Shown here one piece after another: positions 3,178-23,298 of a stretch of 64,000 nt of DNA (its first letter is position 1; every line of letters begins with the position of its first letter). Both the position numbers and the translations under genes were made by a program. The notes below the pieces were generated by a model that saw only the letters and a program-made list of their open reading frames with translations, ran no database searches and was not told the DNA's origin. The DNA lies in IMG/VR virus record IMGVR_UViG_3300045971_000344, positions 1 to 64,000 of that record. One strand, written 5' to 3'.

Positions 3178-4128
3178 GTGAGATCCGAACAAGAATTTTT
3201 GGATTTATCTGCACAGTTAGAAGAGGCAATCAGTTCTCAGAATGAGATGCAAAGACTATTATCTCATTACCAAGGATTAGCCGAACATTATCAGGACATT
3301 TTTAACCTAGCTCCTGTGGGCAAACTCATTTTAGACCTAAGAGGGAACATTCTCCGTGCCAATGATAAGGCTTGTGCGATATTAGGATGTAAAAAGGAAT
3401 TTGTGATTACAAAGTCTATATTCTCTTTTGTAAATACAAAAGGCTCTTCTGCGTTCTATGAAATGTTGCTAGAGCACTTCCATCATGTTAAGTTTGGAAG
3501 CACTGCAATAAGATGTGATGTGATGCTAAAAGCTAAGTGGTGTGCCTTCCATTCCAGTCTGTTTTCCGATGACCTGATTATGGTCACACTAATAGATATT
3601 ACTGACCGAAAAAACACTGAGCATAGAGTTATCCATAGCAGTACCCACGATAGTCTTACAGGGTTATACAATAGAGCCTTTTTTACTTCCGAACTTGAAA
3701 GACTATCTCTGAGTAGGCTATTTCCTATAACGATAGTAAGTTCAGATATTAATGAGCTTAAAAAGGTTAATGACACCAAAGGACATAAAGCGGGTGATGC
3801 CTTAATTAAGCGAGCCGCTTCCGTGTTAGTTGCCTCATTTAGAGCCGAGGATGTTGTTGCGCGTTTAGGCGGGGATGAGTTCATTGTTCTTCTCCCAACT
3901 ACCACTGAAGAACAAGCCCAGCATATTATTATTAGTTTGAAGAATAATCCTATCATTACTTCAGGTCAACTGAGTTTATCTATCGGTATAGCCACTGCGG
4001 ATTCACAAGACAAGTTGCATAGAGCCTTAAAATTAAGTGATAAACGAATGTACCAGGATAAGCAAAAGTATAGAGATAGGGTCAGTCAAGTAGTTCTTGG
4101 AGTGAACAATGGAAACTATAATCAATAA
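3178..4128 (+). CDS. PAS-domain diguanylate cyclase (GGDEF)
   Basis: HDSLTGLYNR, DINELKKVNDTKGHKAGD, RLGGDEF, RxxD I-site (RAED), SIGIA, SDKRMY; N-terminal coiled coil and PAS (IFNLAPVGKLILD...ANDKAC). Confidence 0.92.
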   Translation: MRSEQEFLDLSAQLEEAISSQNEMQRLLSHYQGLAEHYQDIFNLAPVGKLILDLRGNILRANDKACAILGCKKEFVITKSIFSFVNTKGSSAFYEMLLEHFHHVKFGSTAIRCDVMLKAKWCAFHSSLFSDDLIMVTLIDITDRKNTEHRVIHSSTHDSLTGLYNRAFFTSELERLSLSRLFPITIVSSDINELKKVNDTKGHKAGDALIKRAASVLVASFRAEDVVARLGGDEFIVLLPTTTEEQAQHIIISLKNNPIITSGQLSLSIGIATADSQDKLHRALKLSDKRMYQDKQKYRDRVSQVVLGVNNGNYNQ

Positions 4129-5098: not shown

Positions 5099-5755
5099 AT
5101 GTTGGTAACAAAAATATTTCGATTCGAGGCCTGCCATTCAGTAAAAGACGCATACACTTGTAGATGTGACAGAACGCGGACAGATAAATCTGCCGGGGGC
5201 TTACACGGACATTCTTATGTTGTAGAGCTCACCCTTGAAGGGGATGTGGCAAAATCAGATGGAATGGTTATTGACTTCACTCTTGTTAGGGAAACTTTTA
5301 ACCATATAATTGATGCTTTTGACCACACTCTTGTTATTGGGGATACTGATAAAGTAATGGCAACCCTAGGTCCCTACATCTCAGCTCGTTATATAATTTT
5401 CCCTGGTAATCCAACTGCAGAGAATATGGCTGAATACTTCTTTAACTATCTTGATAGTTATCTTACTGACAACTACCTTTTAGGCGTAAGTGTATTCTCA
5501 GTAACCGTGTGGGAAACCGTTACAGGGAAAGCGACTAAGGTAAGAGAGATAAAAGGAGTTTTACCCAGTGACTTGTATATTAGTCCTGCCTTAGCTTATG
5601 GTTGGTCAGACTATGATAAGAAGACTTTTGAGTATAACAACGGACATATTTTAGAAGAAAAGCAGCTGATAACAAACATAACTACCCTAGATACAACTGA
5701 TTCTGCTGGTACTACCCTAAATTTTACTGCTACTCTTGGAAATAAAAACTGTTAA
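5099..5755 (+). CDS. queD: 6-carboxy-5,6,7,8-tetrahydropterin synthase (QueD/PTPS)
   Basis: TKIFRFEACH...LHGHSY...GMVIDF...FDH...NPTAENMA...VWET. Confidence 0.9.
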   Translation: MLVTKIFRFEACHSVKDAYTCRCDRTRTDKSAGGLHGHSYVVELTLEGDVAKSDGMVIDFTLVRETFNHIIDAFDHTLVIGDTDKVMATLGPYISARYIIFPGNPTAENMAEYFFNYLDSYLTDNYLLGVSVFSVTVWETVTGKATKVREIKGVLPSDLYISPALAYGWSDYDKKTFEYNNGHILEEKQLITNITTLDTTDSAGTTLNFTATLGNKNC

Positions 5756-11056: not shown

Positions 11057-11488
11057 GTGTTAGAAAAAAGAGAAAAAGCAAAGGGCTTAACACTAAAGAA
11101 AATACTTTCTGAATCAATTATTTTGGACCTTAACAACGCAAAAGATGTCCATGTTACGAATGTAAAAGAAACTGTCTCTGCAAAAGGTAGAAAAGCAGTT
11201 GTAGCTACTTGTTTTTCCGATCCTAAGGGAAATAAGGTCCCTACTAAGTATAAGTGCTCCGTTATAGGTCTTGAGGATGATGGCCCACTATCAGGACAAC
11301 GGTGTATGTTTAGCTGTGAGTGTGACCGTTATATGTATTACTATGAGTACGCACTCGCCCAAAAGGGCGCGGCTAAGATTAAGTTCTGTAACGGAAATGC
11401 TCCGACCGTTACGAATCCCTCACTTATTCCTGGTGGGTGCAAACACTTAATTGCGCTATCGCGTAAGCTCGTTAAGGAAAAGAAGTGA
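11057..11488 (+). CDS. SWIM zinc-finger protein
   Basis: FSCECD...CKHLIAL. Confidence 0.75.
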   Translation: MLEKREKAKGLTLKKILSESIILDLNNAKDVHVTNVKETVSAKGRKAVVATCFSDPKGNKVPTKYKCSVIGLEDDGPLSGQRCMFSCECDRYMYYYEYALAQKGAAKIKFCNGNAPTVTNPSLIPGGCKHLIALSRKLVKEKK

Positions 11489-12507
11489 GATACTTTGAAG
11501 TTAACAAGACAAACGTAAACCTTACGGGTAATCAGATATATACTATATTTGAGAGCATTAGTAATCAAATGCTGTATAACTTAAACTTGTTTTCTGGTTG
11601 TTTAGAAAAGAACTTAGTGTCAATGTTAGCGTGGGTCTCTAAAAATAGACGAAAAAAGATATCGTCTATTGATAGGGTAAAACAAATCCAATATTTATTT
11701 TATTACATAAGTACAAGTGATTTGGATGAGCGTTTTAGGGCCCTTCGCAAAATAAAAATGGACAAATTCTATGTAAGAAAATTAGTTCAACTATTTATCC
11801 AAAATTCTGAAAATTATCAAGATTTGTATTTAAAGTATCTAAACAATAATATAGATCTTGATGACATGGTAAAAATGTCTGAAATTGAGTCCCGATTAGA
11901 AACCTCTAGAACTCACCTGTATCCTTTGCTTAAGAATTTAATTTCCTATTTAAAGCTTTATAGTGAAATGACTGACTTAGTTATAAGCAAGTATTATAAG
12001 TTTCTTTTCTCTTTGGTTAAAAAGAGGGTCCATGCTACCAGTAGATACTTTGATGAAGAAGAGCTGTATCAGAATTACATCGGAGCAGCGTTAAAGGCAT
12101 TAGATAGGTATGATCCTAAAAAGGGAGCATTAACTTCTTACATACAACTCTGGATAAAGAATAATATGCAGTCCGCAGAAGAAAATCCAGAGTATGGAAT
12201 TGCGTATGAAATACCTGCTTTACGACTAAAACAGTCTCTAGATGATGATACAAAAAAGGATGAAAATTTTTCTATATCTTTGGACTCGTTATGCGATGAC
12301 CAAAATACTGAAGCTTCGGCAGTAACTAGTCTTATGTATTCTTTCACTGATGACTTGGAAGAGGATACTAAAAGACAAACTTTGTGGCACCTAGCGAAGA
12401 TTGCTGACCCTACAGGAATAGCTCGGTTATCTTTGGGGATAATGGAATACGTAGACTCAAGTATGAAACAGCAAATGAAGGCCTCTATGACTGCTTCATT
12501 TACTTAG
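11485..12507 (+). CDS. Phage sigma70-like transcription factor
   Basis: Region-2-like ELYQNYIGAALKALDRYDPKKGALTSYIQLWIKNNM; later ISLDSL. Confidence 0.7.
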   Translation: MRYFEVNKTNVNLTGNQIYTIFESISNQMLYNLNLFSGCLEKNLVSMLAWVSKNRRKKISSIDRVKQIQYLFYYISTSDLDERFRALRKIKMDKFYVRKLVQLFIQNSENYQDLYLKYLNNNIDLDDMVKMSEIESRLETSRTHLYPLLKNLISYLKLYSEMTDLVISKYYKFLFSLVKKRVHATSRYFDEEELYQNYIGAALKALDRYDPKKGALTSYIQLWIKNNMQSAEENPEYGIAYEIPALRLKQSLDDDTKKDENFSISLDSLCDDQNTEASAVTSLMYSFTDDLEEDTKRQTLWHLAKIADPTGIARLSLGIMEYVDSSMKQQMKASMTASFT

Positions 12508-14855: not shown

Positions 14856-15479
14856 GTGAATACAGACGAATCGCTTTATGATATTTTAGGTATAACTAAG
14901 GATGCAACCGAAGAAGAAATTAAGAAAGCATATAGAAAACGAGCACAAGAAACACATCCAGATGTAAAAGGTAGTGCTGAAGAATTTTCTTATGTAAATG
15001 AAGCATATACGATTTTATCCGATAAAAAAGCTAGATTAATCTATGATAGATCAGGTAGGAAACAAGGTGAGAAAAATAAGGACCAATTAAGAACAGAAGC
15101 TATTAGAGAAATTCAAAGGGTTATGGTTCAAGTTTTGGATGACTCTGATGATACTATCTTTTTCTCTAATTTACCTGAGCACATACTTAGGATATTCAAT
15201 GCTAATATTGAGCGTTGTAAGTCAATAGTTGCTGAAACTAGAAAGAAAATAAAACGCTTACGCCGTTATAAACAACGTTTTCACTATAAAAAGGGAGACG
15301 ATAATAACTTTATTCAATTTGGTATTGAAGGACAGGTATATCATTTATCTACGTCTATAAGCGTAGAGATTCAAAAGATACGACAGTTTGAGTTGATGTT
15401 AGAGTTGTTGGCTGAATACGATTGGGAACCTGAAAGTATAAAGCCTTCTTTTGGGTTAAAAACGGTATTTGATAAATAA
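14856..15479 (+). CDS. J-domain (DnaJ-like) protein
   Basis: LYDILGITKDATEEEIKKAYRKRAQETHPD...VNEAYTILSD. Confidence 0.9.
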   Translation: MNTDESLYDILGITKDATEEEIKKAYRKRAQETHPDVKGSAEEFSYVNEAYTILSDKKARLIYDRSGRKQGEKNKDQLRTEAIREIQRVMVQVLDDSDDTIFFSNLPEHILRIFNANIERCKSIVAETRKKIKRLRRYKQRFHYKKGDDNNFIQFGIEGQVYHLSTSISVEIQKIRQFELMLELLAEYDWEPESIKPSFGLKTVFDK

Positions 15480-15496
15480 CGAAAGGGCTATTAGAC

Positions 15497-15988
15497 ATGG
15501 ATGTATCAACTATTGAAGACGCAATTTTAGTAAACCCAGAAGAAGAACAACCACTTGAGGAGCTTGATACTGCATATTATACTGTAGCTCAAATTCCTAT
15601 TGTAGGTGGAATAGTCTATATCGCCGTTAAGCACGGCTATACGATGGAGTCAAAGCCCTCAAAGAGCTTGGCTGACGTTGGAATGATGTTTGTTGAGGTA
15701 ACTGTAAATAATAGTCAAGGCGATTTTGTAGAGGCATTTGTCTTTGGTGCAACCTTTGAACTAGCAACAGAATACTTTCTTAATAAGAAAACGATAGGGG
15801 TAGACATTGAGATCGAACCGATGAATATCCCGTATTTTGATAAAAAGAAAGTAGGCTTTAGAAAACCCAAGCAAGTAAGTAGTACAACCGAAGGTAAAAA
15901 TGTTACCCAATATTTAGAAAACAAAAAGAAGTCTAATAGAAATGCTCGTAAAAAAGCTGCACTTTCAAAAAAGAAAAATAGAAAGTAA
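15497..15988 (+). CDS. Hypothetical protein with basic C-terminal tail
   Basis: ORF 163 aa. Confidence 0.6.
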   Translation: MDVSTIEDAILVNPEEEQPLEELDTAYYTVAQIPIVGGIVYIAVKHGYTMESKPSKSLADVGMMFVEVTVNNSQGDFVEAFVFGATFELATEYFLNKKTIGVDIEIEPMNIPYFDKKKVGFRKPKQVSSTTEGKNVTQYLENKKKSNRNARKKAALSKKKNRK

Positions 15989-16003
15989 TAGAAAGGTTAA
16001 TCC

Positions 16004-16519
16004 ATGTCTATTCACGTTACTAAAGCACTCGCTAGAATCCAAAAGGCACACGATACGTTTAAGGGGTCGTTATTTTGTGGACACTCTGGAGGAAAAGACA
16101 GTACGGTTATCTTAGACCTTGCTCTAAAGGTTGACCCAGGAATAAAGATCATTCATAATAGTAAGGACTCAACTCATCTTGAGACTATATTATTCTTATA
16201 TGAGTTATCAAAAGTCCATACAGTGTTCTTTGTACCCGGAAAAGACATGCAGGAATTTTTAGAATCGAATGACCTCAGCTGCCAGATTGACGGGACGCGA
16301 ATTGCCGAGGCTACTAGAGAAGATGGAAGAAGTGTAGACCTGATCTCAAATGGAGAAAATCTTTCTAGAAGCGATATGAGGTTGTTTGAAAATCGCGGGT
16401 TGTATAACATGAGTATGTTATACCCAATATATGACTGGTCTGATGAGCAAATTTGGACCTATATTGTCCAGAATAACATACCAGTATCTAAAGAATATAA
16501 AGGGAACGGTTATGTCTAA
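16004..16519 (+). CDS. PAPS-reductase-family (PP-loop) protein
   Basis: CGHSGGKDSTVIL, IDGTRIAE, YPIYDWSDEQIWTYI. Confidence 0.8.
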   Translation: MSIHVTKALARIQKAHDTFKGSLFCGHSGGKDSTVILDLALKVDPGIKIIHNSKDSTHLETILFLYELSKVHTVFFVPGKDMQEFLESNDLSCQIDGTRIAEATREDGRSVDLISNGENLSRSDMRLFENRGLYNMSMLYPIYDWSDEQIWTYIVQNNIPVSKEYKGNGYV

Positions 16520-17324
16520 TATAATATTTGCCCCACACTGCGATGATGAGACAATCGGATGTTGGACCTTGTTGTCTGAAAGAAAAATAGACGCAGTATA
16601 CTATTTCTTTGAGCTTTCAGAACAACGTAGGATTGAGGCAAGAAACTGTGCTGAGATGTATGGTTTCTTGCCGTACTTTAATACTGGTAGTACTCTTTAT
16701 GCTTTTACTAGCTTGTGGGAACCTGGGGATACGGTCTATGTTCCTCATATTAAGGATAATCACCCTCACCATAAGACTATAAATCAGCTTGCTAAATCTG
16801 AGGCCTCCAAATTAGGATTGGTTTTAAAGTATTACTCAGTTGATATGAATACTAAAGAGCTGACCGTGTTAGAAAAAGGGAGCCAAAAGAGAGAGGACTT
16901 GATAACGCTCTTTCCTTCTCAGGACACTTTGTGGGGTGGTGACGATAAATATTGGTTATTTGAGAGTCTTTCAGATACTGACTTCAGCTCAAAGATTTTC
17001 ATAAAGACCACTTTTGAAGGGATTCATGCTTATCCAGCAGCACCTGAAGGTGTAGAATTTTTGGCACATCCACATAGGCATATTTTTCATGTAGAAATTA
17101 AGGTGGACGTGTTCCACCATGATAGGGAGATAGAATTTATCCTGTTTAAGCGAGAAATAGAGAATTACATAGTCGTTAACCTTAGGTCTTTACAGTACAA
17201 ATCTTGTGAAATGATCGCCGAAATGTTCTTGAATTACGTTATTTGTAAATATAAGAAAAGGTCTTGTAGTGTTATAGTTAGTGAAGATAATGAAAACGGG
17301 GCTGAGGTGTCCTATGTCTATTAA
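16512..17324 (+). CDS. PIG-L-family deacetylase fused to a T-fold QueD-paralog (DpdL-like) domain
   Basis: N-term FAPHCDDETIGC...HPHH; C-term FEGIHAYP...LAHPHRHIF...REIEF...SCEMIAE...VSEDNENGA (LxxxHRHxF). ATG 16512 is the likely start. Confidence 0.7.
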   Translation: MSNIIFAPHCDDETIGCWTLLSERKIDAVYYFFELSEQRRIEARNCAEMYGFLPYFNTGSTLYAFTSLWEPGDTVYVPHIKDNHPHHKTINQLAKSEASKLGLVLKYYSVDMNTKELTVLEKGSQKREDLITLFPSQDTLWGGDDKYWLFESLSDTDFSSKIFIKTTFEGIHAYPAAPEGVEFLAHPHRHIFHVEIKVDVFHHDREIEFILFKREIENYIVVNLRSLQYKSCEMIAEMFLNYVICKYKKRSCSVIVSEDNENGAEVSYVY

Positions 17325-18675
17325 GTCCTCAATTCCCTTAATGAATATCTTTGGACTAAATCCTACAAGTAAGAATATTCAAAAATTTTACATACCACAT
17401 TTTTCACAAGTTAAGTCTATTTATGGTAATACTAAAGAGACTCTTTTAGATGTAAAGAGCGTAATGTTTACCCGAGACGCGTGGGCCAATGTTGACTTTT
17501 GGAATAGCGATGCAGATGTAATGTACGTAGAAGATAGTTTAAGTTGGCGCGATGCTATGAATACTAGTGGAAACCATTTTGATTACTTCGATGGGTTCTT
17601 AAAGATTTATAGAGTAGCTCATAGTAATTTAGAGTTGGGCTTTGGCGAAAAAAATGACAACCATGTCCATGATATTTATGCTAATTTTCTAACTGCTGAC
17701 ATTTTATGGGTTAGTCCAATTGTATATGATAGAATTTTTCCTTTCTTGAAAAAGCTGTACTGTAGGTCCACGTTGGAGACTTTGAAAGCAAAAACAGTTT
17801 CATTACCGTATCCTGCGTTTTATAAAATTTCAAAAAATAAGGAGTTGGAAAAAACTCTTAGAATACATAAAGCAAAACCTTTAGTGTTTTTGTGGAATCA
17901 TAGACTAGTACCTAATAAAAACTATAAGGACTTTTGTACTATTCTTTGTGAATTGAATAGTCAACATCCTGAAATACCTTTTGAAATTCATTATGTTTGT
18001 GCCGAGCCCGAAGAAAACATACAAAAAGCTACGCCTAATCAGTTAAAGCCTTTTATTAAGTACGTGGGCTTTATTACAGATAAATCTACTTATGAAAAGG
18101 CTTTGAGGGATACTAACATAACAATAGCAACAGCTAAATTAGAAAGCTTTGGAAGTTCTGTTTTTGATGCAATTGGGTTAGGAGTACTTTTACTTAATCA
18201 GGATTGTAATGACGCCCTTTGCTCTTTGATTGGAAAGACCTATACTTTCTCTAAAAAAGACATGGTTGCTGCTATAGTAAAGGCATATAAGAGTAAAACT
18301 TATAGAGAAGAAATGCACGGGCACAACTTGGACGGGGTAAACTCTCTATTGAAGAATGCTCCTGAAAAGGTATTGTCTGAAAAAATAAATGAGTATTTTT
18401 CAGTAAAGAAACAGCAAGGCCCTGTTAAGTCACGTGTTCTTTCAGACGCATTACGAGCATTGGAAAAGACTGCTTTAACAAAGAAACAGCTGTTTCAAGC
18501 TGTAGGATGGAATGTTGCTAAAAATCCTGTAAATGCTCACTGGGCGGGTTACTACTACGCACTTCGCCGAGAAAATGTAAATATTAGTTTAGTAAACGGT
18601 ATACAATACTTTCATTTAACAGCTAAGCCAGAAGTAAGAGAAGCAGCTCTTAAAAAGAAAGGATTATTTTCATGA
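17314..18675 (+). CDS. GT-B (GT4-like) glycosyltransferase with extra C-terminal domain
   Basis: FLWNHRL..NKN, TAKLESFGSSVFDAIGLG (ExFG motif). Confidence 0.75.
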   Translation: MSIKSSIPLMNIFGLNPTSKNIQKFYIPHFSQVKSIYGNTKETLLDVKSVMFTRDAWANVDFWNSDADVMYVEDSLSWRDAMNTSGNHFDYFDGFLKIYRVAHSNLELGFGEKNDNHVHDIYANFLTADILWVSPIVYDRIFPFLKKLYCRSTLETLKAKTVSLPYPAFYKISKNKELEKTLRIHKAKPLVFLWNHRLVPNKNYKDFCTILCELNSQHPEIPFEIHYVCAEPEENIQKATPNQLKPFIKYVGFITDKSTYEKALRDTNITIATAKLESFGSSVFDAIGLGVLLLNQDCNDALCSLIGKTYTFSKKDMVAAIVKAYKSKTYREEMHGHNLDGVNSLLKNAPEKVLSEKINEYFSVKKQQGPVKSRVLSDALRALEKTALTKKQLFQAVGWNVAKNPVNAHWAGYYYALRRENVNISLVNGIQYFHLTAKPEVREAALKKKGLFS

Positions 18676-19094
18676 AGATAGGATATGAAGTTGAGGGAAG
18701 GCTAAAGGGAGTAAGATCATTATTTTTAGATGTTTCCGAATTGGATAAATTTTATGAGCACTTTGTACGATGTAACTGCATAAAGACAGTACATGAAGTA
18801 TGTCAGATCTATGTATCTGACCATTCAAATACTTTAGACTTATTTAGTATTAAGCTTCTTAACCTTTCAAAAGAATTTTTACTGACAGTTGAAGTAACAG
18901 AACTCAAGGTGGATCCGCCTCGGTATATAAATACTATGTTGTGTATAGACTCACCTAGTTTCTGGTTTTTACGGAGCATTGACCAAATTAAGATCTCTAA
19001 GGATCTTAGAGTGTTTTCTACAACGGTTGAGAATATGAGTATAACAAACCCTGAAGAATTTAAAAATGATACTGAGGTAACCTTACATGGCTAG
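18672..19094 (+). CDS. Hypothetical protein within the modification cluster
   Basis: Coupled between the two glycosyltransferases. Confidence 0.65.
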   Translation: MKIGYEVEGRLKGVRSLFLDVSELDKFYEHFVRCNCIKTVHEVCQIYVSDHSNTLDLFSIKLLNLSKEFLLTVEVTELKVDPPRYINTMLCIDSPSFWFLRSIDQIKISKDLRVFSTTVENMSITNPEEFKNDTEVTLHG

Positions 19095-20187
19095 AATTAT
19101 ATATATCCCTATTGAACCGCTCCAAGAGCGTTACTCACAGCAGTGGTACGATAATTTTCCGAAAGCCTTTAAGACCCAGGGTTATGAGACAATAGTTATT
19201 GATGGTATTGTCTTGTCTGATACGGTTGAAGTTGGAACTTTTTTGGATATAAATTCAACCATACACTATAAGTGCGCACAACTTCAAACTATCTCCAAGA
19301 TGTTTAGATCAAAGCAAATACAGGACGGTGATATATTCTTTTTTGGGGACTTAGAATTTTGGGGTATAGAAAGCGTACGCTTACTTGCAGATCTAAACCA
19401 GGTCGATATTAAGATAACCGCATTTTTACACGCCGCGTCTTATACTATTGAGGATGCCTTTGCAATAGCAGAACCTTATCAGCGGTATACTGAGGTTGGA
19501 TGGATTTCGATCTGTGATTTTGTCTTTGTAGGATCTGAGTATCATAAACAAGCTGTAGTAGACCGAAGACTTGCCCCAGTAAACCGGTTGGACCTAGCTG
19601 ATAGAATTGTTGTAACAGGTAACCCTCTTTGGAAAGAAGACTATGCACTTACTAGTGTCCCGGAGAAAAGGGACCAACTTATCATAAGTAATAGATTCGA
19701 TTGGGAAAAGAGGCCCAATTTAAGTTTGGACTTCGCATATATTCTTAAGAAGAGAAATCCAGATTTGCAGATTATGATAACTACCAGTAGGAACGAATTT
19801 AAGTCAAATAAGCAGTGGTTAGTTGACTACGCAACAGCTTTAGAAAAAGATGGTATTGTAACAATAAAGAGTGGACTGTCTAAAGCAGAGTACCATGAAA
19901 TTTTGGCGCAGAGTAAAGTAATGCTAACAAACTCTATTGAAGAGAATTTTGGGTATTGTATTATTGAGAGCTGTGTCTATAATACTTATCCTGTGCTAAA
20001 GAACGCGCTTTCACATCCAGAATTGGTCCAAGGTGATGAACGGTTATTGTTTAACGATGAAGACGAAGTTGTTAGCAAGATCGAGCGTCTCTTAAGCGCA
20101 GATTTTTCTGTTGTACACTATGCAGAAAACTATTTTTACAGTATAGATAGAATAATGACCTATATAAATACTTTAAGTCCGTGTTAA
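19087..20187 (+). CDS. GT-B (GT4-like) glycosyltransferase
   Basis: ISNRFDWEKRP, YHEILAQSKV..TNSIEENFGYCIIES, HPELV. Confidence 0.85.
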   Translation: MARIIYIPIEPLQERYSQQWYDNFPKAFKTQGYETIVIDGIVLSDTVEVGTFLDINSTIHYKCAQLQTISKMFRSKQIQDGDIFFFGDLEFWGIESVRLLADLNQVDIKITAFLHAASYTIEDAFAIAEPYQRYTEVGWISICDFVFVGSEYHKQAVVDRRLAPVNRLDLADRIVVTGNPLWKEDYALTSVPEKRDQLIISNRFDWEKRPNLSLDFAYILKKRNPDLQIMITTSRNEFKSNKQWLVDYATALEKDGIVTIKSGLSKAEYHEILAQSKVMLTNSIEENFGYCIIESCVYNTYPVLKNALSHPELVQGDERLLFNDEDEVVSKIERLLSADFSVVHYAENYFYSIDRIMTYINTLSPC

Positions 20188-20200
20188 ATCGAGGTAGTAT

Positions 20201-21682
20201 ATGTCTTATAGTTTTGTGCCAGCAGCAATAGATTCTTTCGATGCTCGAGGAATGACCTTGTACGTTAAGTATACTAAGTCAAAGTCAAATAACGTCTTTA
20301 TTAAAGAGGACAACCCTAGATACACTTGGTTTATTTGCCCTGACCGAGAGCTCTTAATAGTTAAGAATACAGCACAAGAGTATCACCCTGCAGGTGAAAA
20401 CTTTGATGAGGCTATAAATCTAGATGTTTATGATGATAGAGTCTTACAAGAACTGGGCACCGATATCTATATGCTAAATAGTGGTGCCTTTGGAGACAAC
20501 CCAGAGAGGAGTCCGAGGCTTAGGCGTAATGGAAGAAATCCAAAGTTGGTCCAACCACATATTTTAGCAGACTCCGGAGGATTTCAGATTTTATCCGGGC
20601 GAACGGACTACATTGACCCTATAAAAGTAGTAGAATGGTATAACGAAAATACCGACTGGGGAATGGTATTGGACGTTCCACCAATTGTTTCTGATTGGGA
20701 CAACGTTAAACGCGGTGCTCGTATCCAGGCAAAAAATACTGAAATAATGTTTAAGCACAAAACTAAAGAGCTTGAACTTGTAAATGTTATCCAAGGATTT
20801 GACTCTAAGCAACGTGCCGCATTTTTAGACATGGTTGACCACCCGGAAATAAATAGGCTCGCTATAGCCGGCTCTTATAGGATTGAAAATCTTGTAGAGC
20901 GAATAACTGATATACTTAAGATTATTCACCTTGATAGAAAATTCAAGCATTACCATATTCTTGGTATCTATAGTTTGACCACGCTTTTACCTTTGATTCA
21001 GATCTCTAATTTGTCTACAGTAAATGCGCTTATAACTTCGGACGCAAGTACTCCCTTACAAAGTGCAGTTAATAAATTTTATCATCACCAACAAAGTATT
21101 TTTTCCCCAGAAAGGCGGCTACCTATTGGGCATAAAGATATCGTCTATAACTCACGTCTATATCTTCCCTGTCATTGCCCAGTATGTAGTGCAGTTAAAT
21201 ACCAGAATATTTTTAGTTTCGTAGATACTGGAGTTATAACGGCTCTTTTAACTTTGCACAACCTTTATGAGATTAATCGCTATACATCTATGATGAATGA
21301 GTTATCTCAAACAATAAGCTATAAAGAATATAGATCTATAACTCGGCATCAACTAGGCGGTCGAGCTCCGGCCACACTTCAAGCTCTGGATCTTATCCAT
21401 GAGTATTCAAAAGATCCAGATAAAGCGTTTAAGATCTATTCAGCTATAAATACAGGCTCTATGTTATTCAAGCCCTCACCTTTATACAAAGATATTTCTG
21501 ATACACCAATAGCGTTATTGGTAAAAGGTAATGGAGGAATTGAGAGAAAAGAAGAGACTGCGGAAGAAATGGTCGAACGCCAAAAGAGAGTATTACATAA
21601 CTACGAATCACGTTATAAAATAAAACCCAAGGATAACACAAAGAAAAAGAAAAAGAAGAAAAAATCTAAGGTAAAAGGATGA
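20201..21682 (+). CDS. Guanine transglycosylase (TGT/DpdA-like)
   Basis: ADSGGFQ, VLDVPP, VIQG, HILGI, SDAS, Zn site CHCPVC...HNL. Confidence 0.85.
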   Translation: MSYSFVPAAIDSFDARGMTLYVKYTKSKSNNVFIKEDNPRYTWFICPDRELLIVKNTAQEYHPAGENFDEAINLDVYDDRVLQELGTDIYMLNSGAFGDNPERSPRLRRNGRNPKLVQPHILADSGGFQILSGRTDYIDPIKVVEWYNENTDWGMVLDVPPIVSDWDNVKRGARIQAKNTEIMFKHKTKELELVNVIQGFDSKQRAAFLDMVDHPEINRLAIAGSYRIENLVERITDILKIIHLDRKFKHYHILGIYSLTTLLPLIQISNLSTVNALITSDASTPLQSAVNKFYHHQQSIFSPERRLPIGHKDIVYNSRLYLPCHCPVCSAVKYQNIFSFVDTGVITALLTLHNLYEINRYTSMMNELSQTISYKEYRSITRHQLGGRAPATLQALDLIHEYSKDPDKAFKIYSAINTGSMLFKPSPLYKDISDTPIALLVKGNGGIERKEETAEEMVERQKRVLHNYESRYKIKPKDNTKKKKKKKKSKVKG

Positions 21683-23298
21683 CCCGTATGGCTCCAAAAA
21701 CTGTTGCTAAAAAAGAAATGTCTAAACAAGACATCGTTAAAGAGAAACTTAAAAAAGTAAAAGATAAAAAGAGTAAGAAGGAAGAAGTACCTGTTGAGGA
21801 TAACAAGAAAAGCAAGAAAAAGAGTAAGGGTGATGAAGCTGTGGACGAACTTGTTGAGATCAAGAAGGGTAAGAAAAAGGCAGTAAAGGTTGTGGATGCA
21901 ATAAAAGAAAAGAAAAGTAAGAAGGAAGAAGCAAAGGCAATTTTGAACTGCGCGGTAGACTATGGTGACGTCATGGATGGTATCGAGAAAAAGTACGATA
22001 CTGGAAGTAGTCAGCTAACATCTGATCCTCGTGCTAAATTAAGCATCGGCCTGCTTTCTTTAGACCTTCTTCTTAATGGGGGAGTTTTAGGTGGGGGTTG
22101 GTATACCTTTTTCGGGCAAGAGCAATCAGCAAAATCCACCCTTGCAATGCTAACCTTAGTTTCTGCCTTAAATACCGATGTACCTTTGCTTGGATACTAT
22201 GATTACGAAGGCAGTTCTAGTTATGACTACATCTCAAATATAATGAAAAGCATGAATGTAAAAGGAAACATAGAAAATATTTTTGGCTTAAGAGATGATG
22301 AAGGACATTGGTTGATAAAGCCCAGAGTGCGTTACTATCAGCCAAGTACAGCCGAAGCATTTTTCGATTCAGTAGCTAAATTGCTTAGAGCACTACCGGA
22401 TATAAAGATGATAGGCGATAAGCAGTACTATGTTTATCCAGATGAGAAGACTGTTAGAGCTAAGATAAAAACCTGGGATGAAAAACTTCTTAAAAAGACA
22501 GGTCAGCTATATGTTGAGACATCCAGTTATATAAAGCACCAAGCAATCTTTGTAGTTGACTCTTATCCTGCGATGCTTCCTGAGAAGCAAGACGAAGATG
22601 ATCCAGGTTCAGCAATGGCTGTCCAGGCGCGTATGTTCAGTGAACAAATCAAGCGCATAAAGGCCCGCCTTAAGCCAAAGAAAGTTACTATCATTGGTAT
22701 TAACCAGATCCGTTTGAAGCCCGCAGTTATTTATGGTTCGCCTGAGTATGAACCTTGTGGTGAAGCTTTAAAGCTATTCAGTGATGCTCGTATTCGCTGT
22801 GCCTCTAGATCTATACCGCATGGTAAGGGAGCTATTGAAGAAGAACCTAGTGCAACAGGTGAAGGTATTGACACTTATCGCTATGTTGCATGGCGTACGC
22901 AGAAAAATAAATTGGGAGGAATTCCTAATTCAGAAGCCTGGGGCCGTATCTGGGTTTCAAATAACGAAGGTCAAGGTTGTGGTTTCTGTCCGGTTTTTGA
23001 CGTTTACGAATTTTTAAAAATGACGGGCCAAATAAGTGGTTCCAGAAATAAACTTGTGCTTACTATCCCCCAGTTTAAAGGGTTGAAGGCTAAGTTAAGT
23101 TGGATGCAATTCAAGGTCCTTGTTATCGGTAAGAAAGAGCAGGTTGAAAAGGTATACAAACAGATTGGGTATAAAGATAAATACTTTAACCTACGAAAAG
23201 AGTGCTTTAAACAGTTTGAAAAGGGTGTTGCTACTAAAATGTATTTGGACAAGAAAGTGAAGAACGTAGATGCTAAGGGAGACGAAGATGAGGATTGA
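21679..23298 (+). CDS. RecA/UvsX-like recombinase with Lys-rich N-terminal extension
   Basis: SIGLLSLDLLLNGG, GQEQSAKST, VVDS, INQIRLK..YGSPEYEPCGEALK. Confidence 0.85.
   Translation: MTRMAPKTVAKKEMSKQDIVKEKLKKVKDKKSKKEEVPVEDNKKSKKKSKGDEAVDELVEIKKGKKKAVKVVDAIKEKKSKKEEAKAILNCAVDYGDVMDGIEKKYDTGSSQLTSDPRAKLSIGLLSLDLLLNGGVLGGGWYTFFGQEQSAKSTLAMLTLVSALNTDVPLLGYYDYEGSSSYDYISNIMKSMNVKGNIENIFGLRDDEGHWLIKPRVRYYQPSTAEAFFDSVAKLLRALPDIKMIGDKQYYVYPDEKTVRAKIKTWDEKLLKKTGQLYVETSSYIKHQAIFVVDSYPAMLPEKQDEDDPGSAMAVQARMFSEQIKRIKARLKPKKVTIIGINQIRLKPAVIYGSPEYEPCGEALKLFSDARIRCASRSIPHGKGAIEEEPSATGEGIDTYRYVAWRTQKNKLGGIPNSEAWGRIWVSNNEGQGCGFCPVFDVYEFLKMTGQISGSRNKLVLTIPQFKGLKAKLSWMQFKVLVIGKKEQVEKVYKQIGYKDKYFNLRKECFKQFEKGVATKMYLDKKVKNVDAKGDEDED

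Follow-up and report, generated by a model that had tools for sequence, protein, structure and literature searches.

The gene at the centre of this study, found in a jumbo phage from a pond, encodes a genuine and evolutionarily conserved two-domain protein, in which a predicted minimal zinc hydrolase of the LmbE/PIG-L type is fused to DpdL, the proposed but unproven maker of 7-deazaguanine. In all 12 of 12 informative genomic contexts, the LmbE domain, fused or stand-alone, lies in one gene string together with a PP-loop ATP-pyrophosphatase (annotated as PAPS reductase), a 140-aa protein of unknown function (small140) and a GT4 glycosyltransferase, suggesting that some phages may decorate the 7-deazaguanine in their DNA with an amino sugar. 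We analysed a 64,000-nucleotide stretch (the window; positions 1 to 64,000 of IMG/VR record IMGVR_UViG_3300045971_000344), and extended the gene searches to the whole 294,944-bp record.

Table 1. Features of the deazaguanine gene region, in window positions.
Feature	Position	Strand	Length	Remarks
QueD (6-carboxytetrahydropterin synthase)	5099..5755	+	218 aa	genuine QueD of the pathway, distinct from the DpdL domain
PP-loop ATP-pyrophosphatase, PAPS-reductase family	16004..16519	+	171 aa	stop codon overlaps the start codon of the fusion (ATGTCTAA)
LmbE–DpdL fusion	16512..17324	+	270 aa
Fusion, N-terminal domain (predicted LmbE/PIG-L-type zinc hydrolase)	16512..16985	+		residues 1-158
P8-H9-C10-D11-D12-E13 motif	16533..16550
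H84-P-H-H87 motif	16761..16772
Fusion, C-terminal domain (DpdL)	16986..17324	+		residues 159-270, plus the stop codon
L184-A-H-P-H188-R189-H190-I-F192 motif	17061..17087
Second GT4-like glycosyltransferase	17281..18675	+	464 aa	from GTG 17281; an in-frame ATG at 17314 would overlap the stop of the fusion by 11 nt
small140, unknown function	18672..19094	+	140 aa
Core GT4-type (GT-B) glycosyltransferase	19087..20187	+	366 aa
DpdA-like DNA guanine transglycosylase (TGT family)	20201..21682	+	493 aa

The LmbE–DpdL fusion is a genuine, conserved protein

The fusion gene translates without internal stops, and a longer reading frame beginning at 16431 is not supported, because all homologues begin at the M-x-x-(I/V)-I-(L/F)-A-P-H position. 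To determine whether the fusion could be an artefact, we searched for homologues and retrieved 24 full-length fused proteins at 38-62% identity from independent metagenomes, with a conserved linker and with residues H9, D11, D12, E13, D82, H84, H87, H172, L184, H188, R189 and H190 invariant in the 25 family members. Furthermore, two assemblies are identical across the region, without indels, at 23-27x depth, and an AlphaFold2 model has a mean pLDDT of 93.7 with no drop across the junction. About 16% of the top 150 representative clusters of the N-domain family carry a full DpdL domain, stand-alone forms being the majority (about 84%).

Structural comparison of the model (VIA) matched residues 1-159 to LmbE enzymes, including 2ixd (BC1534, Z 15.5), 3dfi (14.6), 1uan (14.1), 3we7 (13.8), 5cgz (the GalB hydratase, 13.3) and 1q7t (MshB, 11.3), and Foldseek likewise recovered 2ixd (3.6e-6) and BshB 6ull (1.1e-5). 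The catalytic motifs align in register with those of TT1542 (APHPDDG and DRHPDH) and BC1534 (DRHPDH), giving H9, D12 and H87 as predicted zinc ligands, D11 as the predicted general base and H84 as the second catalytic histidine. The H.DDE motif is found in 148 of 150 family representatives, and the N-domain matches the homologue of Xanthomonas phage X1 at 4e-25. However, the match of this protein to the Pfam PIG-L model (PF02585) is below threshold, at 19.5 bits against 28.2 with only residues 5-23 aligned, and eleven of 25 family members match at E<=0.01 (best 1.3e-5), indicating a divergent, truncated branch whose substrate may not be a sugar.

The C-terminal domain carries the LxxxHRHxF signature by which the DpdL family was defined (PMC10516641), with leucine in place of the QueD cysteine and HRH in place of HGH. 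It matches PHROG 17812 over residues 160-268 (E 1e-24), and tblastn connects it to the DpdLs of Acidovorax phage ACP17 (2e-16) and Cellulophaga phage phiST (CGPG_00067, the founding DpdL; 2e-10). In a tree, it clusters with the phiST, ACP17, X1, BCSR5 and PA5oct DpdLs and excludes four phage QueDs with 99/95 support, although no cellular QueD was included. Its T-fold matches include 3d7j (Z 12.0), 3qn0 (Z 11.8) and E. coli QueD 4ntk (TM by target about 0.7), and the three zinc-binding histidines are shared with QueD. Nevertheless, the Pfam PTPS model (PF01242) does not reach E 0.01 for this protein and hits one of 25 family members at 0.008, whereas the true QueD of the genome scores 1.2e-25 (NCBIfam QueD, 7e-20).

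A gene string linked to DpdL in phages

We next examined the genomic setting of the fusion. The record encodes FolE, QueD, a QueE-like radical-SAM gene and a DpdA-like TGT (Pfam TGT 28.0 bits against a cut-off of 26.3, with weak NCBIfam matches to tgt_general and TgtA), and no QueC was detected in the whole record. Homologues of the TGT are found in the ACP17, PA5oct and BCSR5 clusters, and in the contexts L008, L011 and L020 (L numbers denote gene contexts compared here).

The fusion gene is the second gene of a translationally coupled, co-inherited string in the order PP-loop protein, LmbE(-DpdL), small140 and core GT4. These components occur together with DpdL in the window and in L008, L009, L011 and L020-L023, where LmbE and DpdL are fused, and in X1, Burkholderia phage BCSR5, L027 and L029, where they are separate genes. 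In X1, the gene directly downstream of the LmbE gene is the small140 homologue, and DpdL lies three genes further on. The second glycosyltransferase is an accessory part, with homologues in L008, L011, L020 and L029 only; its matches to Pfam Glycos_transf_1 and Glyco_trans_1_4 (E 2e-4) are below threshold.

Among 50,697 phage genomes, the N-domain, the PP-loop protein and small140 each hit only X1, Xanthomonas phage BUDD and BCSR5. The core GT4 (Pfam Glycos_transf_1, E 3.9e-12), the best-conserved member of the module at 46-61% identity in all module contexts, hits only 18 records by tblastn (E<=1e-10), all of them DpdL phages in which it lies next to DpdL. A megablast search of the region against phage genomes found no near relative.

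The PP-loop protein matches Pfam PAPS_reduct (E 1.5e-13) and has an invariant SGGKDS motif, but lacks the C-terminal catalytic cysteine of CysH and any conserved cysteine at all. Single-sequence searches of the PDB with this protein and with the glycosyltransferases found nothing, and only family profiles gave matches, albeit weak ones: CysD (2e-6), FAD synthase (1e-5) and PAPS reductase (5e-4) for the PP-loop protein, and TreT (5e-4) and MshA (0.15) for the core GT4.

The small140 protein has no Pfam, PHROG or NCBIfam hit. The three best structural matches of its model (pLDDT 90.4) are all QueE (Z 5.5-5.7), although it lacks the radical-SAM cysteines; however, Foldseek against the PDB found nothing below E 0.07, hhalign against five phage QueEs gave a probability of 0.1, and only a short N-terminal motif matches the QueE of the genome (E 0.035). 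AFDB clusters gave one unnamed relative and the ESM Atlas nothing usable; a link to QueE remains a lead rather than a finding. We also inspected DpdL proteins with a 125-aa N-terminal extension for a second informative fusion, but the extension has no Pfam match and their context lacks the glycosyltransferase.

These results support the first-pass annotation, which had described a PIG-L deacetylase fused to a DpdL-like domain, noted that no QueC was seen and proposed that the fusion ties the base pathway to a sugar pathway, as far as computation can test these points. It missed the PP-loop ATP-pyrophosphatase directly upstream, which belongs to the same enzyme superfamily as QueC and is as tightly linked as the glycosyltransferase.

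A proposed amino-sugar extension of the deazaguanine pathway

FolE, QueD and the QueE-like enzyme are enough to make 7-carboxy-7-deazaguanine (CDG), and the published proposal is that DpdL decarboxylates CDG to 7-deazaguanine. We infer, with a probability of roughly 0.5, that the DpdL domain supplies this DpdL-dependent base and that the rest of the string tailors it by the logic of mycothiol, bacillithiol and GPI-anchor synthesis: the GT4 would transfer an N-acetylhexosamine, the LmbE domain would remove the N-acetyl group with a zinc-activated water, and the PP-loop enzyme would use ATP to adenylylate a carboxylate or phosphate and join it to the product, or alternatively make the activated donor. 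Fusing LmbE to the base-binding T-fold implies that both domains handle one molecule containing both the deazapurine and the sugar, and the predicted end product is therefore a glycosylated 7-deazaguanine in virion DNA rather than plain dDG.

This reading is in line with GT4–LmbE pairs that typically act in sequence (MshA/MshB, BshA/BshB, PIG-A/PIG-L), followed in mycothiol synthesis by the ATP-dependent ligase MshC, and with BshB and MshB being among the structural matches. One relative has a GNAT-like gene, of the MshD class, directly after the fusion. No ThyA/hydroxymethylase family gene was found in the genome, so within the limits of that search no hydroxymethyl-pyrimidine acceptor is evident for the glycosyltransferases. 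In addition, dDG could not be obtained from dpdL plus dpdA alone, including the ACP17 genes, and further enzymes were suggested to be needed (PMC10516641), while PA5oct, which has DpdL with an adjacent glycosyltransferase, has restriction-resistant DNA attributed to a modified G of unknown chemistry (PMC12191111).

Several considerations weigh against it. No activity has been demonstrated for DpdL, for this LmbE domain, for the PP-loop protein or for the glycosyltransferase, and plain 7-deazaguanine offers no obvious hydroxyl or carboxyl group for O-glycosylation, leaving the acceptor unexplained. phiST makes dDG with DpdL but without the GT, LmbE or PP-loop genes, so the additional genes are not needed for DpdL function as such. 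The LmbE domain has 158 aa against 220-300 aa in characterised deacetylases, its fold family contains the non-deacetylase GalB, and the nearest relatives of the PP-loop protein (CysD, FAD synthase) adenylylate sulfate or phosphate rather than carboxylates, which fits donor activation as well as ligation.

Alternative interpretations

A possible though less likely alternative is that the LmbE-type domain acts on the deazapurine itself, for example by hydrolysing an amide or nitrile-derived intermediate (7-amido-7-deazaguanine to CDG, salvaging host preQ0/ADG), or by serving as the zinc-dependent (de)carboxylation or hydration catalyst while the Cys-less T-fold merely binds the base; the PP-loop enzyme would then play a QueC-like role, adenylating the CDG carboxylate, and the glycosyltransferase would act later or on something else. 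In support of this, the domain is fused to a purine/pterin-binding T-fold rather than to the glycosyltransferase, it lacks the C-terminal parts of sugar deacetylases (aligning over 157 of 230 residues of 2ixd and 156 of 310 of MshB), its fold includes the GalB hydratase, DpdL lacks the catalytic cysteine of QueD, dpdL plus dpdA gave no dDG in E. coli, and a relative of QueC by superfamily is encoded next to the fusion in a genome lacking QueC. However, phiST makes dDG with DpdL alone and has no LmbE or PP-loop homologue, and the LmbE domain was never found without the GT4, a classical arrangement that would be unexplained under this reading.

A more doubtful alternative is an amide-linked conjugate, in which the PP-loop enzyme adenylates the CDG carboxylate, as in the first half-reaction of QueC, and couples it to the amine exposed by the LmbE domain on a GT4-installed hexosamine instead of to ammonia, giving an N-glycosaminyl-7-amido-7-deazaguanine, with DpdL binding and presenting CDG rather than decarboxylating it. 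CDG is the expected end point of FolE, QueD and QueE without QueC, the order of steps would mirror MshA, MshB and MshC, the PP-loop motif is intact in a gene translationally coupled to the fusion gene, and decarboxylase activity of DpdL has never been shown. On the other hand, DpdL phages of the phiST type contain dDG, which needs a decarboxylation for which DpdL is the only candidate, the closest solved relatives of the PP-loop protein do not act on carboxylates, and ACP17 and PA5oct have DpdL and the glycosyltransferase without LmbE or PP-loop genes.

That a lost stop codon or an assembly error joined two neighbouring genes, or that the C-domain is a diverged QueD, is refuted by the homologues, assemblies, model and tree described above and by the separate bona fide QueD, even though the two domains are separate genes in X1, BUDD, BCSR5, L027 and L029, where they still share one cluster.

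Relationship to known systems

The DpdL domain is homologous over its full length to the phiST and ACP17 proteins (39-41% identity), with FolE, QueD, QueE and DpdA but no QueC in the genomic setting. phiST lacks the PP-loop/140-aa/GT4 string and has MazG-like and AAA_18 kinase-like neighbours, while ACP17 has only the glycosyltransferase, the protein upstream of its DpdL being GT4-like. The N-domain shares its predicted Rossmann-like fold, its (A/P)-H-x-D-D-E and H-P-x-H motifs and a GT4 partner with LmbE/PIG-L zinc de-N-acetylases (MshB, BshB/BC1534, TT1542, PIG-L, diacetylchitobiose deacetylase, Dbv21/Orf2*), but is phage-encoded and fused to, or clustered with, a deazapurine T-fold enzyme. 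The PP-loop protein shares the SGGxDS motif with QueC and PAPS-reductase-type enzymes (CysD, CysH, FAD synthase, DndC) and, like QueC, sits in a deazaguanine pathway, but it is not a QueC homologue by the Pfam search and is only 171-216 aa long. As in T-even 5-hmC glucosyltransferase and similar systems, a phage glycosyltransferase is linked to a non-canonical base pathway; here, however, it is GT4-type and specific to DpdL phages, and its presumed target is a 7-deazapurine. We found no description of this module or of a glycosylated 7-deazapurine in DNA in the literature we could search, which is incomplete.

Discussion

7-Deazaguanine DNA modifications are a major phage counter-defence against restriction enzymes, the list of known derivatives is short, and DpdL is the least understood enzyme of the pathway. 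The physical fusion of DpdL to an LmbE-type hydrolase, and its genetic linkage to a PP-loop ATPase, a small unknown protein and a DpdL-specific GT4, name concrete candidates for the missing enzymes. More speculatively, and rather less likely than not, a clade including this phage, X1, BUDD, BCSR5 and hundreds of metagenomic relatives would write a previously undescribed base into its DNA, a 7-deazaguanine carrying an amino sugar made by a five-protein addition (PP-loop adenylyltransferase, LmbE-type deacetylase, the weakly QueE-like 140-aa protein and one or two GT4s) to the FolE/QueD/QueE/DpdL/DpdA core, while DpdL-plus-GT phages (PA5oct, ACP17, BUCT-ZZ01, Phosso) would make a simpler glycosyl-deazaguanine. 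This would be the first glycosylated purine analogue in any DNA, and would explain why DpdL plus DpdA alone failed to reconstitute a product for ACP17. If confirmed, it would add a new chemical class of DNA hypermodification, and would provide new enzymes for nucleic-acid engineering and a new target class for modification-dependent defence systems.

Domain architecture of the predicted LmbE-DpdL protein

The 294,944-bp virus record, which is rated by CheckV as 100% complete, is a jumbo phage with nearly all genes on the + strand. To define the start of the reported gene, we compared its stop-free ORF of 270 aa with homologous proteins. Although a purely mechanical ORF call extends the reading frame back to 16431, all homologues start at the MxxxI(I/V)xAPH position, and the ATG at 16512 also overlaps the stop of the upstream gene (ATGTCTAA), so 16512 is the start. 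The three motifs reported in the first-pass annotation, which had read the protein as a PIG-L deacetylase fused to a DpdL-like T-fold domain, are present and correctly placed, namely PHCDDE at residues 8-13, HPHH at residues 84-87 and LAHPHRHIF at residues 184-192.

We next examined an AlphaFold2 model of the protein built on 25 homologues, which is confident throughout (mean pLDDT 93.7, pTM 0.79), with no dip at the domain junction. The modelled N-domain (residues 1-159) superposes on LmbE/PIG-L-family enzymes, including BC1534 (Z 15.5), Dbv21 (14.6), TT1542 (14.1), diacetylchitobiose deacetylase (13.8) and MshB (11.3), as well as on the LmbE-fold hydratase GalB (Z 13.3). At sequence level, the Pfam PIG-L match of this protein is sub-threshold (19.5 against 28.2 bits); however, eleven of 25 family members match PIG-L at E<=0.01, and a profile of the N-domain aligns both catalytic motifs in register with TT1542 and BC1534 (APHPDDGELGC; DRHPDH). 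Residues H9, D11, D12, E13, D82, H84 and H87 are invariant, and by analogy with MshB and BcZBP, H9, D12 and H87 are predicted to be the zinc ligands and D11 the general base. The N-domain thus belongs to the LmbE superfamily by predicted fold and catalytic residues, as a divergent, minimal branch whose substrate is unknown.

The modelled C-domain (residues 157-270) superposes on PTPS/QueD T-folds, including SCO6650 (Z 12.0), E. coli QueD and PH0634. It matches the stand-alone phage family phrog_17812 (E 1e-24) and the two proteins on which DpdL was defined, phiST CGPG_00067 and the ACP17 protein. A maximum-likelihood tree placed all fusion C-domains and six stand-alone DpdLs in one clade that excludes four phage QueDs (99/95 support), and the Pfam PTPS model does not match the C-domain, whereas the genome's own QueD scores 1e-25. 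The C-domain therefore does not cluster with ordinary QueD, and its sequence signature, phylogeny and context all fit membership of the DpdL family, although this assignment does not extend to activity. The genome's QueD is itself 218 aa long, with the PTPS domain covering only residues 3-146, followed by an unannotated C-terminal extension of about 70 aa.

The fusion is conserved in independent sequences

To determine whether the fusion is real, we searched 5.8 billion proteins and retrieved 24 that cover 96-100% of the query at 38-62% identity, originating from different samples and assemblers. The linker is conserved in these proteins, and there are invariant residues on both sides of it. 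Additionally, two Logan assemblies from pond-metagenome runs reproduce 15400..20400 with no substitutions or indels at 23-27x depth, although either run may be the source sample.

An exhaustive profile search with the N-domain alone found 1,214 representative clusters, 182 of them at E<=1e-30. Of the top 150, about 16% carry a full DpdL domain, and the rest are stand-alone proteins of 205-245 aa. Stand-alone LmbE-type proteins carry diverse C-terminal tails of 50-85 aa, apparently of beta-alpha-beta type, which in Xanthomonas phage X1 keep a 'G-Y-H' that aligns with the DpdL 'G-I-H' strand, and these tails may be degenerate remnants of a T-fold left after fission. In the tree, stand-alone DpdLs nest among fused ones (100/98 support), so fusion or fission has occurred more than once, suggesting that the two functions are linked.

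Pathway context in the phage genome

We subsequently asked whether the same genome carries the remaining steps of a 7-deazaguanine pathway. It encodes QueD, FolE, a QueE-like radical-SAM protein and a TGT/DpdA-like protein, with only one DpdL copy and no QueC, extending to the whole record the absence noted for the window in the first-pass annotation. The QueE-like and FolE genes lie at the far end of the linear record; if the genome is circularly permuted or terminally redundant, they are within about 10-25 kb of QueD and the module, and the whole pathway would be loosely clustered around the record ends. This is the gene set that the DpdL paper associates with 2'-deoxy-7-deazaguanine, dDG (PMC10516641). 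That paper measured dDG only in phiST-like Cellulophaga phages, and DpdL's activity is a proposal that has not been demonstrated.

Features of the phage record and of related contigs (L-numbers denote the phage and metagenomic contigs compared here).
Location	Strand	Feature
Window 3178..4128	+	PAS-GGDEF diguanylate cyclase
Window 5099..5755	+	QueD
Window 14856..15479, 11485..12507, 21679..23298	+	DnaJ-domain protein, sigma-70 region-2-like protein and RecA-like protein
Window 16004..16519		PP-loop ATP-pyrophosphatase of the PAPS-reductase family
Window 16512..17324	+	LmbE-DpdL fusion
Window 17281/17314..18675		GT4-like protein
Window 18672..19094	+	140-aa unknown protein ('small140')
Window 19087..20187		GT4 glycosyltransferase
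Window 20201..21682		TGT/DpdA-like protein
Whole record, about 286292..286990		QueE-like radical-SAM protein
Whole record, about 289158..289688		FolE
L008:8842-9324		GNAT-like acetyltransferase (weak Pfam hit)
L021:4306-5076		Amidoligase_2
L023:2727-3494		Amidoligase_2
L024:5085-5558		Phosphoribosyltransferase (PF00156)
L025:5085-5558		Phosphoribosyltransferase (PF00156)
L027:4832-5311		Phosphoribosyltransferase (PF00156)
L019:5962-6339		DpdL homologue of Pseudomonas phage PA5oct (gp166)

A co-inherited gene module

The fusion gene is one of a tightly packed, mostly overlapping gene string. The same order (PP-loop, LmbE(-DpdL), ~140-aa protein, GT of 363-427 aa) recurs in every contig long enough to judge, 12 of 12. 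These comprise the fused form in L008, L009, L011, L020, L021, L022, L023 and the window itself, and separate genes in Xanthomonas phage X1, Burkholderia phage BCSR5, L027 and L029, where DpdL is a separate gene in the same cluster. FolE, QueD, QueE or a DpdA-like gene often lie alongside. In several DpdL clusters of marine T4-like contigs, a phosphoribosyltransferase sits between QueD and FolE, or beside them, hinting that some DpdL phages convert the deazapurine base to a nucleotide, rather than, or as well as, exchanging it into DNA through DpdA. Amidoligase_2 genes lie a few kb upstream of the module in L021 and L023 and are possible further tailoring enzymes, as is the GNAT-like gene directly after the fusion gene in L008.

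Against 50,697 phage genomes, the distribution of these families is very narrow. The N-domain, the PP-loop protein and the 140-aa protein each hit exactly three records, X1, BUDD and BCSR5. The 366-aa GT hits 18 records at E<=1e-10, all of which belong to the 29 DpdL-bearing records, and the GT is adjacent to DpdL in ACP17, the PA5oct group, Synechococcus phage BUCT-ZZ01 and Sinorhizobium phage Phosso. DpdL phages thus fall into three tiers: those with DpdL only (phiST, in which dDG was measured, RHph_I1_18 and others); those with DpdL plus a DpdL-specific GT4 (ACP17, the PA5oct group, BUCT-ZZ01 and Phosso); and those with DpdL, GT4, PP-loop, LmbE and small140 (X1, BUDD, BCSR5, this phage and its metagenomic relatives). 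PA5oct DNA resists several restriction enzymes in a pattern attributed to a modified G whose chemistry is unknown (PMC12191111). The PA5oct DpdL homologue reads HFH instead of HRH in the signature motif, its upstream neighbour gp167 is the DpdL-specific GT4 homologue and gp168 is DpdA-like; both neighbours are annotated as hypothetical and are candidates for the uncharacterised G modification.

We also examined the partner proteins individually. The PP-loop protein keeps an invariant SGGKDS motif and has no conserved cysteine, so it is not a PAPS reductase or a DndC-type sulfur enzyme, and its nearest solved relatives adenylylate oxyanions (CysD 2e-6, FAD synthase 1e-5). The GT is a GT4/GT-B enzyme, with TreT nearest and MshA matched weakly. 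The 140-aa protein has no family assignment. Its predicted fold is confident (pLDDT 90), and its three best PDB matches are all QueE, from E. coli, B. multivorans and B. subtilis, but only at Z 5.5-5.7 over residues 1-133. Its N-terminus (E-V-E-G-r-l-k-G-x-x-x-L-F) resembles the QueE 'EGEG..G...LFIR' motif but lacks the CxxxCxxC cluster; it may be a cluster-less QueE derivative that binds CPH4 or CDG, although profile comparison did not support homology and other tests gave no support, so that we regard this only as a lead.

Elsewhere in the window, the phage encodes a diguanylate cyclase (GGDEF E 1.4e-33), which could let it manipulate host c-di-GMP signalling. The nearby RecA-like protein is unusually long (539 aa), with the RecA domain matched only at residues 290-374, and in the relative L011 the RecA-like and DpdA-position genes carry inteins or LAGLIDADG domains.

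Proposed function of the module

From the architecture, the conserved catalytic residues, the pathway context and the co-inheritance, we infer that FolE, QueD and QueE make CDG, and that the DpdL domain converts it to the DpdL-dependent base, which is 7-deazaguanine on the published proposal. The module would then add and tailor a sugar, with the GT4 transferring an N-acetylhexosamine, the LmbE domain removing the acetyl group, and the PP-loop enzyme spending ATP either to ligate an acid to the freed amine or to activate a donor. This corresponds to the accepted order of MshA, MshB and MshC in mycothiol synthesis, and of BshA and BshB in bacillithiol synthesis, and the GNAT-like gene of L008 is of the MshD class. 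Fusing the putative deacetylase to a purine-binding T-fold argues that both domains see one molecule containing both base and sugar. We assign a probability of about 0.5 to this general reading, the weakest point of which is that 7-deazaguanine has no obvious O-glycosylation site.

The main rival, which we consider possible but unlikely, is that the truncated LmbE core acts on the deazapurine itself, with the PP-loop enzyme in a QueC-like role. A more specific variant, in which the PP-loop enzyme amidates CDG with the exposed sugar amine, appears more doubtful still, and an artefact or a plain QueD is essentially excluded.

The DpdL paper does not mention PAPS reductase, deacetylase or glycosyl functions, and in the incomplete body of literature searched we found no paper linking LmbE, PAPS reductase, hexosamine or a glycosyltransferase to deazaguanine DNA modification; the predicted chemistry has not been reported. 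What we describe is therefore a known pathway, DpdA/DpdL 7-deazaguanine, with an undescribed, conserved add-on module and a Rosetta-stone fusion.
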